Sequence record: NC_055733.1
Strand: one strand, 5' to 3'
Length of the DNA stretch: 64,000 nucleotides
Shown: piece after piece, positions 12,038 to 62,921 of the stretch
Layout: each line of letters starts with the position of its first letter
Position numbering within the stretch: the first letter of the stretch is position 1
Program-made: the position numbers and the translations under genes
Notes under the pieces: model-generated
The model's input: the letters and a program-made list of their open reading frames with translations, nothing else
Database searches by the model: none
Told to the model about the DNA's origin: nothing

Positions 12038-12643
12038 TTATGGGCTCTTTTTGTATGTGGAACACAACTCACAAATTGCGTCCGATTTGATTCGACGCAA
12101 CGAGAGATCGAAGCTGCCGTGTTGCTTGCAAGTTACCTGATATTGTGTGCTGTTGCCAGCCCATCCGGAGACTTGACGAATTGTGTATCCGTGTTTCTTT
12201 GCGTACTCGCTGGTGATTTGAATAGCAAGATGCTTTGGCTTTTTATTTTGTATGCCAACGCATATAGTACAAGTTGGTGCGTCGAACATGACTTTACCTA
12301 CCTTCTCATAGAAAATGTGACCGTGCTCACAAGTCAAAGCGACCTGGCTTTCCCTGTGCCAATCCTCTTTTGGTGAGGGAGGCATATGGAGTTTAAACTT
12401 TGTGTTTGACAAGTTGCGACGCACCAGAGTCTCTTTTTGTTGGGCAGTGAACGGGTAGCGTCGATTGCACCAACACATGAGTCGTTCAATCTGTTGAAAA
12501 GTACCAGGGAACACAGGCTCACCTAGCCATGTTTTCTTTGAGCACTCTTCACAAACACAAGCATACACTTTGTTCCTAGCGTTGTCAACACAAATTATAC
12601 GTGTGATAGTGAAATGAACAATTTTCATACCGATTCTGTTCAT
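12038..12643 (-). CDS. Cys/His-rich zinc-ribbon-repeat protein resembling homing-endonuclease DNA-binding modules
   Basis: CEEC, CEHGH, CTIC, CKQHG, CELC motifs; antisense inside the late cluster; no HNH or GIY-YIG motif seen. Confidence 0.6.
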   Translation of the reverse strand: MNRIGMKIVHFTITRIICVDNARNKVYACVCEECSKKTWLGEPVFPGTFQQIERLMCWCNRRYPFTAQQKETLVRRNLSNTKFKLHMPPSPKEDWHRESQVALTCEHGHIFYEKVGKVMFDAPTCTICVGIQNKKPKHLAIQITSEYAKKHGYTIRQVSGWAGNSTQYQVTCKQHGSFDLSLRRIKSDAICELCSTYKKSP

Positions 12644-12683
12644 AATCTATTCTCTTCCAGAAAGTCGCGCCAGCGACTGCGAA

Positions 12684-12763
12684 GCTAACTTATTGATTTT
12701 ATTGAAGAAGACAAAATAGATTCTCATTAAAGATATATAAGAGATTTTATTTTGTCTTTTTAG
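12684..12763. repeat. 80-bp structured non-coding repeat, copy 1
   Basis: 76/80 identical to 49510-49589 by manual alignment; contains an 18-bp imperfect inverted repeat. Confidence 0.9.
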
Positions 12764-12810
12764 CGGCTATGCCGCAGTCTGCGACTAAATACAAGTAAAG
12801 GAGGATACCA

Positions 12811-13633
12811 ATGTTTGGGTATTTTTACAACAGTATTTCAAGACGCTACATTGTTCTAATGGGACAACTGTTCAACGGTGTACAGGTAGCGCGTGAACGA
12901 GACGGTAAAGTTTCGTATCAGAAAGTGCCGATCACATACGCCAGTAAAGAGCGGTTCACTATGAAGCTCAACAGTGTTAACAGTAACATCGACGAACATG
13001 GAGTTGCTCGCATTGAGACGATTTTGCCACGTATGAACTTGGAACTGATCGACATGGTATATAACCCTATGTTCAAGACTGGTGTCAACGTCAGATCCCA
13101 ATCTCTTGGTGCAGGTACTTCTGTGTCTCGTAATAATCCGGTACCATACAAGTATATGTTCAATCTGTCAATCGCTACCAGATTTGAGGATGATATGTTT
13201 CAGATTGTTGAACAAATATTGCCATATTTTCAACCAAACTTTACTACCAAGATCACGGAACTTCACGATAGTTTAACACCGGTTGATCGCGATATTCAGA
13301 TCACAATCCAAGGACTTTCTATTTCAGAAGATCTCGAAGGTGCATCTACCGAACGTCGTCGAATTCAGTGGGATATTACGTTTGAACTTGACGGCTGGCT
13401 ATATCCTCCAATTGCGAACTTGAAGGGCGAAATTAAGACAATTTATCTTGATTTCTATTCTAACAAGACTGAGTTGAAAACGAGCGAAGAAAATTTTGAA
13501 TCTGTTGACTTTGAAGTGGACCCAAGAACTACCACAAAAGAAAATTGGGACGGTAAATATATTCAGACAACAAGCGAGAATATTCCTATTCCAAAAGAGC
13601 CTACTAAACCGGGACCGAGAGGATTAAAACACA

Positions 13634-18627: not shown

Positions 18628-18705
18628 TATAAAGAATGGGCGTAAATCGCCCGTTCATTAATGTCTCTTTTTGAGACAACTAAATAGTATAAGAAGGAGA
18701 CATTA

Positions 18706-20271
18706 ATGAACACTATTTTTCTAAAGCTATTGCAGCCTTGGATGAAGGACGACGAAAAACGAGTTCAATCCGATATTTCAGATCGTATCGATTCATTCGC
18801 TGTTCCTGATAATGCCGACGGTGCAATCGAAGTTGATAAACAAATTGACACAACTGCTCCAAAAACGGCAATTGTTCAGTCTGTTCTCGGATACGCTCCG
18901 AAAATACAAAATACCAAAGACTTGATTAACCAATATCGTAGTCTTTCTAAATATCACGAAGTTGATAATGCAATTGATGAAATTATTAATGACGCAATCG
19001 TTCAAGAAGACAACCGCGATACCGTTTATTTGGATCTCGATAAGACTGATTGGAACGAAAGTGTCAAAGAAATGGTACGAGAAGAATTCCGTACTATTCT
19101 AAAACTGTTGAAGTTTGAGCGAGAAGGAAAGCGTCATTTCAGACGTTGGTATGTCGATAGTCGTATCTACTTCCACAAGATGATTGACCCGGCTCGTCCA
19201 AAAGACGGAATAAAAGAACTGCGTTTGCTTGATCCGCGTAACGTTGAATACTATCGCGTTAACTTGAAATCAAACGAAAACGGCAATGATGTTTATAAGG
19301 GAGTGAAAGAATTTTTCACTTACGGCGCAACGGAAGATAACAGATACAACATTAGCGGTAACTCCAATAATCTTGTTCAGATTCCGATTGACGCAATCGT
19401 ATATGCTCATAGTGGCAAAGTTGATATCGACGGCAAAACAATCGTTGGTTATCTTCATAACGTAATTAAGCCAGCCAACCAACTCAAAATGCTCGAAGAT
19501 GCAATGGTAATTTACCGTATCACTCGCGCTCCTGAGCGTCGTGTTTTCTATATCGACGTTGGTAACATGCCGAATAAGAAGGCAACGCAACATCTAAATA
19601 ACGTTATGCAGGGACTAAAGAATCGCGTTGTTTATGATAGCTCTACTGGTAAAGTCAAAAACAGCTCCAATAATCTCTCCATGACGGAAGATTACTGGTT
19701 GATGCGTAGAGACGGTAAAGCTACTACCGAAGTTTCCACGCTTCCTGGTGCGCAATCCATGGGCGAAATGGATGATGTTCGTTGGTTTAATCGTAAACTA
19801 TATGAATCTATGAAAATTCCGCTTAGTCGTTTGCCGCAAGAAGGAGCTGGTGTTACATTCGGTTCTGGTAATGATATCACTCGCGACGAACTGCAATTTA
19901 CCAAGTTTATAAGAGGTCTACAACAACAGTTTGAGCCTATTTTCTTGAATCCGCTTAAAACAAATCTGATGCTAAAAGGCAAAATGAGTGATTTGGAGTG
20001 GGAAGAACAGGCAGAGAATATCAAGGTTGTTTTCTCAAAGGACTCTTATTACGAAGAGATTAAAGATGTTGAGATTCTGGAACGTCGAGTCAATTTAGTG
20101 CAAACCCTTGCTTCCGCGGAAGTCACTGGTAAGTATTTGTCTCATGAATACGTGATGAAAAACATTCTGCGTATGAGCGACGAAGATATTAAGACTGAGC
20201 GGGAAAAGATTGACGGTGAACTAAAGGATTCCGTTTATAAAAACCCAGATGATCCTATGGAGGAATTTTAA
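18706..20271 (+). CDS. 20: Portal protein gp20
   Basis: FRRWYVDSRIYFHK, YRITRAPERRVFYIDVGNMP, EDYWLMRRDG. Confidence 0.97.
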   Translation: MNTIFLKLLQPWMKDDEKRVQSDISDRIDSFAVPDNADGAIEVDKQIDTTAPKTAIVQSVLGYAPKIQNTKDLINQYRSLSKYHEVDNAIDEIINDAIVQEDNRDTVYLDLDKTDWNESVKEMVREEFRTILKLLKFEREGKRHFRRWYVDSRIYFHKMIDPARPKDGIKELRLLDPRNVEYYRVNLKSNENGNDVYKGVKEFFTYGATEDNRYNISGNSNNLVQIPIDAIVYAHSGKVDIDGKTIVGYLHNVIKPANQLKMLEDAMVIYRITRAPERRVFYIDVGNMPNKKATQHLNNVMQGLKNRVVYDSSTGKVKNSSNNLSMTEDYWLMRRDGKATTEVSTLPGAQSMGEMDDVRWFNRKLYESMKIPLSRLPQEGAGVTFGSGNDITRDELQFTKFIRGLQQQFEPIFLNPLKTNLMLKGKMSDLEWEEQAENIKVVFSKDSYYEEIKDVEILERRVNLVQTLASAEVTGKYLSHEYVMKNILRMSDEDIKTEREKIDGELKDSVYKNPDDPMEEF

Positions 20272-27058: not shown

Positions 27059-27286
27059 TTATGCTGCTTTCTTCGGGTTGTTGTAAACATACTTGGTGCG
27101 ACGCTGAACTTTACCAGCAAACTCAGCTTCCAGTTTGTTAGCTACTGATTCACGACGCATATCATTTACTTTATCGATGTAACGGCCAACTGTGCGCGGG
27201 GATACCTTGAGTTCACGGGCAACTTGAGCTTTGGTTTTCTTAGAAGCAGTAACAGCAAAGTAGGCTTTGATTTCGATGTTGTTCAT
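27059..27286 (-). CDS. HTH protein, paralog 2
   Basis: TKAQVARELKVSPRTVGRY; directly under a strong early promoter. Confidence 0.78.
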   Translation of the reverse strand: MNNIEIKAYFAVTASKKTKAQVARELKVSPRTVGRYIDKVNDMRRESVANKLEAEFAGKVQRRTKYVYNNPKKAA

Positions 27287-27293
27287 GATGTTT

Positions 27294-27375
27294 TCCTCAG
27301 AGTTTGTTTCGTTGTGAATCGCGTCTCGCGTTTCGATGTAGCTATAATAACAGGTTGTTCCAATGCGTCAACGAC
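27294..27375 (-). promoter_or_regulatory. Early promoter cassette, copy A
   Basis: TTGACG-16-(TGT)TATTAT followed by the leader CATCGAAACGCGAGACGCGATTCAC...CTGAGGA; related copies at ~57930, 62098 and 62822. Confidence 0.8.
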
Positions 27376-27390
27376 TTTTTGGAAAATAAT

Positions 27391-27417
27391 AAAAAAAAAT
27401 CCCGCCGAAGCGGGATT
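27391..27417 (-). terminator. UUCG-tetraloop terminator
   Basis: AATCCCGC-TTCG-GCGGGATT plus a T run; same stem at ~54760 and ~58005. Confidence 0.85.
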
Positions 27418-27418
27418 C

Positions 27419-27886
27419 TTATAGGTAGATCACGGTAGATTCAGTGATTTCGGTTCCGTCGATGTGAACAAACATGCTGTTGCGAGGCTCACGAACAACA
27501 ACAGTCATACCAGTTTTCTCGATCAATCCGCGGACAAAAGACTTGAACTCGGAATCTCGCTCTGATTTCAAGTCCGCATACTGGGCAGAATCGATACAGC
27601 TAAACCAATATTTGTTATTGATATTGCTCATATTCCAAGCCCATGGGAAAGATTCTCCCATTACATCAAATGCCATGGATGGGATTTCTTTGCTAATTAC
27701 CTGAGCTGGCTTAGTAGCCGGTTTTTCCACACTCTTAACCGGTTCTACCTTCTCTTGGATTTCAACCAGTTCAATAGGAGCGGGAATAACTTCCTGAGCA
27801 ATCTCTTCAACAACAGGAACAATACTCTCTTTAACAATTTCTACCTCTGACGACACAACATCTTGCGCCTTGCTTTTCTTAGCCAT
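27419..27886 (-). CDS. hoc: Hoc-like head decoration protein without Ig domains
   Basis: Immediately downstream of inh as in T4; C-terminal VVVREPRNSMFV resembles the Hoc/Inh capsid-binding motif. Confidence 0.55.
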   Translation of the reverse strand: MAKKSKAQDVVSSEVEIVKESIVPVVEEIAQEVIPAPIELVEIQEKVEPVKSVEKPATKPAQVISKEIPSMAFDVMGESFPWAWNMSNINNKYWFSCIDSAQYADLKSERDSEFKSFVRGLIEKTGMTVVVREPRNSMFVHIDGTEITESTVIYL

Positions 27887-39668: not shown

Positions 39669-40033
39669 TGAATAATCAGATCGCCACAAGCAACATTACA
39701 TTTGCCGCTTTTGCCTTTAACTCGAACGTCGCCACATTCTACAGTCAAGCGACCAACGTCACCACCAATCACAACGTCACCCGCATCAACATCGCAGTTA
39801 ATAACATCGCCTTTAATTTCAACATCACCGGTACCAACTTCCAGTTTGTCAACGTTGCCGACAATCTGAATCACAAGCTTAGAGCTGTTTTCTACTTCTT
39901 CGCCGTCTACCATGACTTTGCCGCCAACGATATCGACATTCTTACCGGCCAGAACTTTTCCGTTAACGGTAATGTTCACGCTGTTTTTTGCAAACATTCT
40001 CGCTTTGTTGCGAAATGCATCCAAAAATCCCAT
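39665..40033 (-). CDS. Beta-helix/solenoid-repeat protein
   Basis: Repeating V-x-x-G-D-V-x-I-x-G-D-V pattern; start moved to MGFLDAF. Confidence 0.65.
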   Translation of the reverse strand: MGFLDAFRNKARMFAKNSVNITVNGKVLAGKNVDIVGGKVMVDGEEVENSSKLVIQIVGNVDKLEVGTGDVEIKGDVINCDVDAGDVVIGGDVGRLTVECGDVRVKGKSGKCNVACGDLIIH

Positions 40034-40034
40034 A

Positions 40035-40433
40035 TTAACTCCTAAAACTTCTAGCGGTTGCAATTTTGTGACAGATGATTTCCAGATCACCCTCTGGATA
40101 AACAGTATGACCGTTTTTGATAGCAGCTTTGAATTGGCCAATCGTCTCTTCCATTTTAGCAGTCGGCACAGTCGCAACGGCGGTAATCGCGTGATTTAAG
40201 CCAGGCTCACTAAAGCTACGCATACCGTTACCGAACATGCCATATTTGATTACGAGAGATTTTAGATCATCATGATCACCGCCGTCAAGCAAAACAAGAG
40301 TCTCATGATCTCTTGCCCACATAACAACATCAAACTCGGGATTGACCATCATTCTGGTAACGGCGTGTGCTGCTTGAATACCAGCTTGTTTATCGCCTAA
40401 GTAGCGATTGATAAACACATAACACTTTTTCAT
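40035..40433 (-). CDS. Peptidyl-tRNA hydrolase 2 (Pth2)-like protein
   Basis: GIQAAHA, W...ETLVLL, FSEPGL..AITAVA. Confidence 0.65.
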   Translation of the reverse strand: MKKCYVFINRYLGDKQAGIQAAHAVTRMMVNPEFDVVMWARDHETLVLLDGGDHDDLKSLVIKYGMFGNGMRSFSEPGLNHAITAVATVPTAKMEETIGQFKAAIKNGHTVYPEGDLEIICHKIATARSFRS

Positions 40434-49399: not shown

Positions 49400-49427
49400 A
49401 TTATACACGACGAAATAGCTATGTCAA
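49400..49427 (-). promoter_or_regulatory. Sigma70-type promoter for the transglycosylase gene
   Basis: TTGACA-16-TATAAT. Confidence 0.75.
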
Positions 49428-49509
49428 ACGGTATAATCGATTTTATCTCATTTGATTATTAAATAATCTACTCCAGAAATCAGATATCGTAAGATTGCGA
49501 GCATAGCGA

Positions 49510-49589
49510 GCTAACTTATTGATTTCATTGAAGAAGACAAAATAGATTCTCATTAAAGTATTATAAGAGATTTTATTTTGTCTTTTTAG
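49510..49589. repeat. 80-bp structured non-coding repeat, copy 2
   Basis: 76/80 identical to 12684-12763, same orientation. Confidence 0.9.
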
Positions 49590-49645
49590 ATCATTTAATT
49601 AACACTTATAACAAGGTTTTAACAAACTAGCGGCTACGCCGCAGT

Positions 49646-49957
49646 CTATCGACACTCTTCTTCCTTGAGATCTTTTCGATAATGACAAATGATCTCGTTT
49701 TGCTTCTGAACATAGTTGAACACTTTTTCAAGCCAGATCCGATATCTTACCGAATCATCATAGCTCATTGCTACATAAGGCTTACCGTCGTCAAGAATTA
49801 CTCTCCACTCCGGTCGATAAGTCTCTACTACTTCCGGTCTCGGTGGGTGATAGACAACTGGCTTGATTTCTTGTTGGTGTTTCGCACACCCACCCAACAT
49901 CAGAGTTAGTCCAATCAATGCATGTTTCATTTGCATTTCTTCGCTCCCATGATACAA
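49646..49957 (-). CDS. pseT.2: Outer-membrane spanin (o-spanin)
   Basis: Lipobox LGGC, Pro-rich segment, overlaps the i-spanin. Confidence 0.8.
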   Translation of the reverse strand: MYHGSEEMQMKHALIGLTLMLGGCAKHQQEIKPVVYHPPRPEVVETYRPEWRVILDDGKPYVAMSYDDSVRYRIWLEKVFNYVQKQNEIICHYRKDLKEEECR

Positions 49958-54741: not shown

Positions 54742-54787
54742 GTTGATTTCCAAATGAAAAATCCCGCCGAAGCGGGATTTGAGCTAA

Positions 54788-57929: not shown

Positions 57930-57990
57930 TCCTCAGATTGTGTGTTTCGATTTGGCTATAATAACAGGACTAGATTTTGATGCAAGCACT
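57930..57990 (-). promoter_or_regulatory. Early promoter cassette, copy B
   Basis: TTGCAT-16-(TGT)TATTAT, then ATCGAAAC...CTGAGGA. Confidence 0.75.
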
Positions 57991-58028
57991 TTCTGAAAAA
58001 TAAAAATCCCGCCGAAGCGGGATTATTG

Positions 58029-61833: not shown

Positions 61834-62091
61834 TTATGCTGCCTTTTTGTTTTGACGACGGGTTATAGTGCTCGGCTTGGTGCCAACAAATATCACTTTC
61901 TTGGTACCACGTTTTATACCAGCGAACTTCACTTCCAGATCAGCGGCGATTTGAGCTTTAACAGCTTCGCGGCCTTGTTCTACCCAGCGACCGATGGTGC
62001 GAGGAGAAACTTCCAGTTCACGGGCGACTTGGGCTTTGGTGATGTTTTTACGAACTACAGAAACATAAGCTTGGATTTGTACGTTTTTCAT
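61834..62091 (-). CDS. HTH protein, paralog 3
   Basis: TKAQVARELEVSPRTIGRW...LEVKFAG...KKAA. Confidence 0.78.
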   Translation of the reverse strand: MKNVQIQAYVSVVRKNITKAQVARELEVSPRTIGRWVEQGREAVKAQIAADLEVKFAGIKRGTKKVIFVGTKPSTITRRQNKKAA

Positions 62092-62097
62092 GATGTA

Positions 62098-62176
62098 TTC
62101 CTCAGAGTTTGTTTGTGAATCGCGTCTCGCGTTTCGATGTGGACATAATAACAGAACTGGATTACCGTGCAAGCAC
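62098..62176 (-). promoter_or_regulatory. Early promoter cassette, copy C
   Basis: TTGCAC-16-(TGT)TATTAT; leader nearly identical to copy A. Confidence 0.8.
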
Positions 62177-62187
62177 TTTTTAAACTT

Positions 62188-62821: not shown

Positions 62822-62886
62822 TTCCTCAGTTGGTGTATCTCGTTTCGATGTGGTCATAATAACAGGACTGGATTTCGATGCAAGCT
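62822..62886 (-). promoter_or_regulatory. Early promoter cassette, copy D
   Basis: TTGCAT-16-(TGT)TATTAT, then CATCGAAACGAGA...CTGAGGA. Confidence 0.75.
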
Positions 62887-62921
62887 TTTTCCAAAAAAAA
62901 TCCACCCGAAGGTGGATTTAG

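Follow-up and report, generated by a model that had tools for sequence, protein, structure and literature searches.

Aeromonas phage Ah1 (NC_055733.1; Straboviridae, Cinqassovirus) carries a family of structured intergenic repeats, each a nested palindrome of 130-200 nt, which we tentatively regard as candidate sites for transcript-primed replication or for the initiation of recombination. Two members of the family, here called copy 1 and copy 2, lie in the stretch of 64,000 nucleotides that was analysed (the window; genome positions 124001-188000, plus strand), and coordinates given below are those of the window unless the genome is named. The reading as initiation sites is ranked first. A close second, and somewhat more doubtful, is an RNA module at the ends of transcripts, and the two readings can coexist. 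The regular spacing of the copies speaks for an origin-like function or another on the scale of the genome, the local anatomy for one at the ends of transcripts, and no single model explains all of the properties described here.

The two copies in the window

When the window is compared with itself, copy 1 and copy 2 are identical at 77 of 81 positions (12683-12763 against 49509-49589). A sequence-only reading of the window had given the match as 76 of 80 nt, between 12684-12763 and 49510-49589; its coordinates and sequences were verified, the higher count belonging to a slightly longer span. As it had described, three of the four differences fall in the loop, ie the apical loop of the central hairpin, and the fourth is located 5' of the hairpin. 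Each copy contributes two instances of the AT-rich 18-nt arm, so that the window has four where 0.13 would be expected, and the 20-nt GC hairpin motif occurs twice against an expectation of 0, directly 3' of copy 1 (12761-12780) and behind a 38-nt insert in copy 2 (49628-49647). The lead-in ATAATCTA..CCAGAAA and the AGTCGC/GCGACT arms of copy 1 were also seen as described. Folding relative to shuffled sequence gave z = -5.0 for copy 1 and z = -6.7 for copy 2. Copy 1 lies between the minus-strand gene ORF201 and gene 15; copy 2 is flanked by vs.1 and a pseT.3-like gene, both on the minus strand.

The description of the pair as a simple 37-kb duplication was not borne out, since they are two of eight Ah1 copies of a wider family. 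An assembly artefact was ruled out, because the element is found at both loci in Aeh1, PX29, phiAS5 and Ahp1_CNU-2021, whose genomes were sequenced independently. The proposal of a functional structured cis element has held up better: conservation in relatives and covariation, the two properties set beforehand as checks, are both present.

Distribution of the element

A search of the assembled Ah1 genome located eight copies at seven loci, all of them intergenic:

Genome 39884, 136683 (copy 1), 173509 (copy 2) and 218599, plus strand: copies of the element
Genome 23862, 78243, 107914 and 108094, minus strand: copies of the element, those at 107914 and 108094 forming a tandem pair

With the 81-nt core as the query, blastn matched only T4-like Aeromonas phages, namely Ah1, avDM12-TAAL, Aeh1, phiAS5, phiWae14, PX29 and AsFcp_1, AsFcp_2 and AsFcp_4. 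Pattern scans combined with a hidden Markov model gave counts of 8 copies for Aeh1 and 7 each for PX29 and phiAS5. The blastn search placed the core at nine positions each in Aeh1 and avDM12-TAAL, compared with the eight copies recovered in Aeh1. A tandem pair is present at one locus in Ah1 and Aeh1. Seven loci are common to Ah1, Aeh1, PX29 and phiAS5:

Upstream of gene 47
The early-region site designated 40k
Between a draG-like gene and a 1200-aa open reading frame (ORF)
Genes 54/26
Upstream of gene 15
pseT.3/vs.1
Upstream of ndd

A more distant relative, Ahp1_CNU-2021 (hereafter CNU), was found by tblastn with gp15, which is 77% identical. It has exactly seven copies, none of which was detected by blastn. 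Five of its seven loci are shared with the phages above and two are new, one beside the primase gene and one inside the tail-fibre cluster; there is no copy at gene 47 or ndd. In the still more distant phage CC2, the region upstream of gene 15 has only a plain hairpin and a late promoter. The family thus spans at least four genus-level lineages of T4-like Aeromonas phages, with five loci syntenic across four. Pattern scans that covered IMG/VR, metagenomes and one genome for each bacterial species yielded nothing above chance. Rfam models run over the whole window gave no match at gathering thresholds and only chance-level matches at E <= 10. Identity as a Y RNA, 6S RNA, tmRNA or tRNA-like molecule was rejected, as no Rfam family matched and no tRNA or tmRNA was found. 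The repeat is not described in the Aeh1 and T4-family genome papers and reviews consulted, nor did full-text literature searches yield a description; judged against Rfam and the literature searched, the family appears to be previously undescribed.

Number, spacing and exchange between copies

Seven loci are found in every lineage examined, even though two of them have turned over. They recur at intervals of ~30 kb, broadly about 25-45 kb. In Ah1 the gaps around the circular map are 16-45 kb, with a coefficient of variation (CV) of 0.28, which is more even than chance (P = 0.002). In CNU they are 25-39 kb (maximum 38.6 kb), with a CV of 0.15 (P = 3.7e-5), and the maximum gap is itself improbably short (P = 2e-4). 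The evenness holds when the null is restricted to ORF-free gaps (P = 0.0012 for Ah1, 3e-5 for CNU). Regular spacing is the most surprising property of the family and, together with the fixed number, it demands a function that involves the genome in its entirety.

The cores of paralogues are 81-92% identical. Orthologous loci in different genera are 71-80% identical, which is approximately the value for non-orthologous loci. That paralogues are closer than orthologues, and orthologues no closer than non-orthologues, shows exchange of sequence between copies within a genome, ie concerted evolution. The copies are also more conserved than the coding DNA around them: between Ah1 and Aeh1 the cores are 96% identical and the surrounding 1.7 kb is 88.5% identical.

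Covariation and the folding strand

The central hairpins of 37 copies were aligned. Partners can pair in 87.6% of the cells, compared to 44-64% when they are slid by one to three columns, and compensatory changes occur in nine of the 24 pairs (59 cells, against 18 in shuffles). One pair, for example, is C-G in Ah1, G-C in PX29 and A-U in CNU. Three lower-stem A-U pairs of the Ah1 type are G-C in CNU, and a bulged A in Ah1 becomes a U.G pair in CNU by means of an extra G on the opposite arm. The apex behaves differently. Its sequence, TCTC-n-TTAAAG, then two or three bases, then TATAAG-(G)AGA, is pseudo-palindromic and near-invariant in all lineages (TCTC-A-TTAAAG-nnn-TATAAG-AGA in the copy 1 hairpin), as is a motif in the flanks. 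The presence of invariant bases at the apex and flanks amid changing stems strongly suggests that some factor reads them. The claim that the stem is conserved over the loop is therefore restricted to the two near-identical Ah1 copies, for which it stands; across the family it fails, the apex being invariant and the stems compensating.

Several measures distinguish the two strands. On the sense strand 87.6% of central-stem cells can pair, compared to 81.2% on the antisense strand. One-sided changes, read on the sense strand, give 76 G.U or U.G cells and 22 A.C cells, the latter mostly at the frayed base of the stem. When the hairpins are folded with RNA energy parameters, 28 of 30 copies are more stable in the sense orientation (mean -18.0 against -14.7 kcal/mol); DNA parameters show no difference between the strands. 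These measures constitute moderate evidence that the sense strand is the folding strand. The purine content of the 5' arm is 74-87% in all lineages, including those in which its sequence has been replaced.

Anatomy of the element

The general layout, in order along the sense strand, is as follows:

Lead-in motif ATAGTAnnCT..CCAGAAA (Ah1 type)
Short GC hairpin, differing in sequence between copies, with pairing kept
GC-GNA-GC motif, as GCGAAGC, GCGTAGC or GCGGAGC
Conserved unpaired segment GCTAAC..ATTGA (Ah1-type copies)
Central hairpin of about 24 pairs
AT-rich linker, optional
Inverted counterpart of the GC motif, GCTACGC
Final small hairpin

In copy 1 and its surroundings the features are:

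12642..12663, plus strand: lead-in ATAATCTA...CCAGAAA, the first stem beginning about 10 nt after its TAnnCT hexamer
12664..12677, plus strand: GC hairpin H1, GTCGC-GCCA-GCGAC
12679..12685, plus strand: flank motif GCGAAGC, with its partner GCTATGC at 12766-12772
12686..12698, minus strand (antisense): match to the IHF consensus WATCAANNNNTTR, the invariant columns being the consensus positions
12705..12761, plus strand: central hairpin, with a purine-rich 5' arm and a pyrimidine-rich 3' arm
12763..12785, plus strand: 3' GC hairpins H3 (GCGGC-TAT-GCCGC) and H4 (GTC-TGC-GAC)
12785..12791, plus strand: late promoter CTAAATA of gene 15, abutting copy 1 and outside the repeat, with a Shine-Dalgarno sequence at 12800-12804 and ATG at 12811

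Those of copy 2 are:

49400..49427, minus strand: perfect sigma-70 early promoter of vs.1, TTGACA-16-TATAAT, just outside the repeat
49463..49479, plus strand: lead-in ATAATCTACTCCAGAAA
49493..49513, plus strand: 'variant B' 5' arm GATTGCG-AGCATAGCG-AGCTA, pairing with 49628-49646 in a rod
49512..49524, minus strand (antisense): IHF-consensus match
49531..49587, plus strand: central hairpin, its arms identical to those of copy 1 and three apical-loop bases different
49590..49627, plus strand: AT-rich linker (optional), repeating the left inner segment in degenerate, inverted form
49628..49653, plus strand: 3' arm TAGC-GGCTACGCC-GCAGTC and H4 (GTC-TATC-GAC)

In the central hairpin a 10-bp upper stem is separated from the lower stem by a mismatch or a 3x3 internal loop. 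In the Ah1-type copies (Ah1, Aeh1, PX29 and phiAS5) the core is about 24% GC, as estimated by eye, and the genome is 42% GC. The flank motif is conserved as GCGNAGC...GCTNCGC and gives the flanks a two-fold symmetry, GC-GNA-GC reading towards the centre from both sides. The left and right arms are mutually inverted and could close the entire element. In copy 1 a long-range closing helix is possible between GACTGCG (12675-12681) and CGCAGTC (12773-12779); in variant-B copies, such as copy 2, closure of the arms is predicted to give a long rod; and in CNU copies a predicted 14-bp helix closes a three-way junction (-61 kcal/mol, z = -7.4). Across the folded copies the predicted stability ranges from -41 to -61 kcal/mol, with z = -5 to -7.4. 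H1 is replaced in paralogues and orthologues by GTGGC/GCCAC, AGTGC/GCACT, GCGCC/GGCGC or CCGACC/GGTCGG. The AT-rich linker is kept in some family members and deleted in copy 1. On the minus strand the lead-in of copy 1 overlaps the ribosome-binding region of ORF201, and H4 of copy 2 overlaps the stop codon of the minus-strand gene 49646-49957.

The lead-in motif accompanies the element in every orientation. It resembles the late consensus CTAAATA without matching it, and was rejected as a general class of promoter because, genome-wide, the motif is essentially confined to the elements. Two other identities were also discarded. Mimicry of a CRISPR repeat by H1 (GTCGCGCC...) is suggested by no more than a resemblance, and variant-B copies have no H1. 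A small antisense ORF starting from an ATG in the loop has no Shine-Dalgarno sequence and variable stops, joins an annotated ORF only in phiAS5, and was judged non-coding. Two of the Ah1 copies have another long inverted repeat beside them, whose structured loop measures about 40 nt: the 40k copy (ACCAGCGATTC...GAATCGCTGGT, genome ~39960-40080) and the ndd copy (TTGGAGCGAT...ATCGCTCCAA, genome ~218700-218790).

A possible role in initiation

To our knowledge, how replication starts in T4-like phages outside the T-even group is not established. It is possible, though short of probable, that the seven sites serve a genome-wide DNA transaction, ie the initiation of replication or of recombination-dependent replication. 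Sense transcription, begun either in upstream genes or at the TAnnCT lead-in, would run into the element. A stable hybrid would then form between the pyrimidine-rich template and the purine-rich 5' arm of the transcript, leaving the displaced sense strand to fold, and a factor reading the invariant apex and the flank motif would process or stabilise the hybrid or the folded structure. The hybridised RNA would prime leading-strand synthesis, co-directional with the downstream gene. Such an element would be the functional analogue, in phages lacking MotA, of the T4 R-loop origins oriF and oriG.

This reading is favoured by the fixed number of sites, their even spacing, the upper bound on the gaps, the homogenisation of the copies and the invariant bases. 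The turnover of two loci with number and spacing kept also argues for sites that work genome-wide. A hybrid with a purine-rich sense RNA, together with folding of the displaced strand, fits both the strand bias and the co-orientation with downstream genes, and the AT-rich island formed by the core of Ah1-type copies is counted in its favour. T4 has about 5-7 origins, which are R-loops formed from transcripts and coincide with recombination hot spots (PMC3016281); concerted evolution of the copies fits such hot spots. Both a motA gene and a middle-promoter consensus are missing in Aeh1 (PMC1524935), so that phages of its type cannot build T4-type origins and their origins must be built differently.

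Several results count against initiation. The lower stem in CNU is GC-rich, unlike the AT-rich stem of the Ah1 type, so that a conserved unwinding element is not a feature of the family. A promoter search of both copies gave no consensus promoter at the 5' end of the element, and GC skew follows gene orientation only, without an origin signal. The R-loop origins of T4 need no specific RNA structure and share no sequence (PMC3016281). Homogenisation within a genome means that the strand bias amounts to about seven independent events against one. Copies at gene 47 stand directly behind a terminator and have no lead-in motif. Finally, an ordinary UUCG terminator plus promoter is found at element-free sites (the Ah1 tail-fibre site and CNU gene 47), which fits a role at transcript ends at least as well.

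In a broader form, which we hold a little less tentatively, a factor-recognised and regularly spaced class of hairpin may organise a genome-wide DNA transaction in MotA-less T4-like phages, with number and spacing under selection. Members of such a class could be structured origin or primer-RNA sites, or strand-specific sites for nicking or clamp loading, ie fixed enhancers of late transcription. In practical terms, a homologous structured element at seven regular sites is a concrete and cheap set of candidates. Should they prove to start replication or recombination, this large phage group would have its first sequence-defined family of origins; if they are sites of RNA processing or insulation, they would represent a new phage RNA element together with a factor that reads its apex. 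Either way they offer a clean natural example of viral concerted evolution and compensatory change, and the elements are landmarks for the engineering of aquaculture-relevant Aeromonas phages.

Alternative roles

The element could instead be the 3' end of the upstream transcript, folded as a stable Y- or rod-shaped RNA domain that blocks 3' exonucleases, or is cut or bound by an apex-reading factor, and that ends or processes read-through before the next promoter. Such a module would be the phage equivalent of the RNase III sites of T7 or of REP/ERIC hairpins in 3'-UTRs. Taken by itself this is doubtful, but it survives better than any other alternative. Every copy occupies the space between a stop codon and the promoter of the following gene. 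In most sense copies the hairpin has a ribosome-binding site and ATG 33-80 nt downstream, and CTAAATA, the late-promoter consensus of these phages, with which that of Aeh1 agrees (PMC2988020), occurs in exact form 15-60 nt behind the hairpin in 15 of the 37 copies, including five of the seven CNU loci. Some other copies have sigma-70 early promoters downstream, such as that of vs.1 beside copy 2. The element runs in the same direction as the downstream gene, ie in sense orientation, at all seven CNU loci and at six of seven in phiAS5; wobble pairs favour the sense strand, and the predicted stability is very high. There is also a positional equivalence to terminators, seen at the UUCG site among the Ah1 tail-fibre genes and at the gene 15 hairpin of CC2. 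The former (genome ~204600-204700) is a stretch of 359 nt without an annotated gene between two tail-fibre genes, ending in a UUCG terminator and a late promoter; CNU carries the element there.

A transcript-end role leaves the fixed number of seven and the regular spacing unexplained. The signature of a U-tract terminator is also missing: neither copy has an intrinsic terminator (G+C stem plus U tract) on its sense strand, one weak terminator-like site on the antisense strand coincides with H3 of copy 2, and the CNU copies end in ...GGGGAGTGTCGC. No sigma-70 promoter was found within either copy, and the earlier statement that the element is neither a promoter nor a terminator consensus was thus upheld on both counts. 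The phage already has ordinary terminator/early-promoter cassettes, and at gene 47 in Ah1, PX29 and phiAS5 the copy lies between a promoter and a canonical terminator that immediately precedes it. Three Ah1 loci (vs.1, 40k and ndd) are inverted, ie antisense to local transcription, the lead-in flipping together with the element. The two-fold symmetry of the flank motif would be superfluous for an RNA role.

That symmetry would be at home in a double-stranded or cruciform DNA site with no RNA role, bound by a symmetric factor at the apex and at the inverted GCGNAGC boxes. Variants of this idea invoke bending by IHF (Ah1 type), regular organisation of the chromosome, topoisomerase or gyrase sites, break or nick sites for recombination by gp46/47, or loading of the gp45 clamp to activate nearby late promoters. 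A DNA site would accommodate the regular spacing, the fixed number and the invariant pseudo-palindromic apex, and exact late promoters adjoin five of the seven CNU loci. The late-transcription enhancer of T4 is a strand-specific DNA discontinuity acting in cis (PMC2988020), which is counted on the same side. A sequence match to the IHF consensus WATCAANNNNTTR lies at a fixed position in the element, full in 21 of 30 copies and relaxed in 27 of 30, and the elements account for eight of the 33 sites that match the consensus in the Ah1 genome; the segment is absent from all CNU copies. The strand-asymmetric wobbles and the compensated bulge point to a folded single strand, both strands fold equally well with DNA energy parameters, and no candidate binding protein or nickase was identified. 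We judge a pure DNA site to be improbable.

A little less probable again is a small trans-acting RNA encoded in many copies, made from the TAnnCT lead-in or excised from longer transcripts, that titrates an RNA-binding protein of the host or phage; the proposed targets are a phage DUF2828/VWA 'RNA-binding protein' or a defence factor. The helix joining the 5' and 3' ends would make a discrete RNA domain, the invariant apex suits recognition by a protein, seven to nine near-identical copies would supply a high dose, the lead-in flips with the element, and a DUF2828+VWA protein is encoded in all the lineages examined. In Ah1 this is gp150 and in phiAS5 ORF0290, annotated as 'RNA-binding protein' and having DUF2828, DUF7788 and VWA domains. 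The protein has no informative sequence match in the PDB. The element has no terminator behind it and no consensus promoter ahead of it, Rfam gave no match to it, Y RNA families included, and the conserved single-stranded segment has no base-pairing targets in the phage genome; the spacing, too, is unexplained. A parallel with Ro60 and Y RNA was set aside as a weak lead only, there being no informative PDB match and no match to the Rfam Y RNA models.

Least of all do we favour a selfish inverted-repeat element of the miniature inverted-repeat transposable element (MITE) type, spreading and persisting without function: the copies do have terminal inverted repeats and a palindromic body (GCGAGCGTAGCGAGC with GCTCGCTACGCTCGC; GGAGCGTAGCGACA with TGTCGCTACGCTCC), occur in both orientations, form a tandem pair at one Ah1/Aeh1 locus and differ between lineages at two loci, but this is very unlikely given five loci syntenic over four genus-level lineages with the number fixed at seven, conservation above that of flanking coding DNA (96% against 88.5% for Ah1/Aeh1), stems that covary around an invariant apex, regular spacing, no copy in the bacterial genomes or metagenomes scanned and no transposase identified. 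No target-site duplications were seen by eye.

Comparison with known systems

One likeness in T4-type phages is to the PeSL cassettes (promoter-early stem-loops) of RB49 and phi1 (Arbiol et al. 2010, PMC2839356), which are also dispersed intergenic repeats with a stable stem-loop ahead of a promoter, and are recombinogenic. PeSLs have a sigma-70 early promoter inside the repeat and a short stem-loop of a G-run and a C-run, and they occur in hyperplastic regions next to ORFans. The Ah1 element, in contrast, has no internal promoter, and the promoters that follow it lie outside the repeat and differ in kind (late at copy 1, early at copy 2). It is a composite of 130-200 nt with an invariant apex, regularly spaced and syntenic even in gaps between core genes (14/15, 54/26). 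Ah1 has separate PeSL-like terminator/promoter cassettes of its own.

The T4 origins oriF (uvsY) and oriG (34) are likewise cis elements of about 100 bp, several per genome (PMC3016281, Kreuzer & Brister 2010). They are transcribed, as the element would be, and in Ah1-type copies the segment is A+T-rich. They are linked to recombination hot spots and often lie near late-gene clusters, have no common sequence or structure, and need a MotA middle promoter and an unwinding element. The Aeromonas phage copies differ in being homologous, highly structured and without a recognisable promoter, and those of CNU are not AT-rich. No arrangement of a MotA box and -10 sequence was seen by eye in the element alignments.

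Among bacterial repeats, REP/BIME-1 (RIP/RIB) and ERIC are imperfect palindromes found in both orientations at the 3' ends of transcription units, where they fold in the mRNA, and they consist of inverted GC-rich units around a central segment with an IHF consensus. They are chromosomal, number tens to hundreds of copies, and are not known to be regularly spaced or to have a conserved apex. The Aeromonas phage family has a layout comparable to RIP/RIB (BIME-1), with a putative IHF site (consensus matched in 21 of 30 Ah1-type copies, 27 when relaxed, none in CNU), and differs in being found only in phages and at seven fixed sites. The RNase III sites of T7 comprise about ten related intergenic hairpins of approximately 60 nt, with an internal loop, which lie in sense orientation at gene boundaries and in a single orientation on one transcript. 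Cleavage has been demonstrated and leaves a 3'-terminal hairpin that makes the upstream mRNA more stable. The central hairpin of the phage element is similarly predicted to have stems around an internal loop; the elements are, however, larger, have a closing helix and flanking hairpins, and in some cases are antisense.

The neighbouring gene and other repeats

The gene next to copy 1 had been taken as part of the same unit, a claim that was not borne out:

12038..12643, minus strand: ORF201, between genes 14 and 15, belonging to phrog_20519, a phage family of unknown function

In CNU, which keeps the element, and in CC2 the 14/15 locus has no ORF201. As CNU has the element without it, the gene is unrelated to the element and is an independent insertion beside it. 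Its similarity to HNH-endonuclease families is weak and its Pfam hit to CapR is sub-threshold; it may be the remnant of a free-standing insertion of the homing-endonuclease type.

Three further arrangements were observed in the window:

27323-27420, 57937-58027, 62124-62184, 62835-62921 and 54753-54782, minus strand: a second, unrelated repeat family, consisting of a UUCG-loop intrinsic terminator with a U tract and, about 20 nt later, a sigma-70-type early promoter GTTGAC-17-TATTAT
27183-27309 and 61988-62114: a direct repeat of 127 nt, 74% identical
18653-18711: a 25-nt inverted repeat

The second family looks like terminator/early-promoter cassettes of the PeSL type. The 127-nt repeat covers the starts of two small paralogous minus-strand genes behind two of the UUCG-terminator cassettes. 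In the inverted repeat at 18653-18711 the 3' arm has a Shine-Dalgarno sequence and ATG, and the loop contains the late promoter CTAAATA. This is the classic T4 arrangement, which conceals the ribosome-binding site in early read-through transcripts and has late transcription begin within the hairpin.

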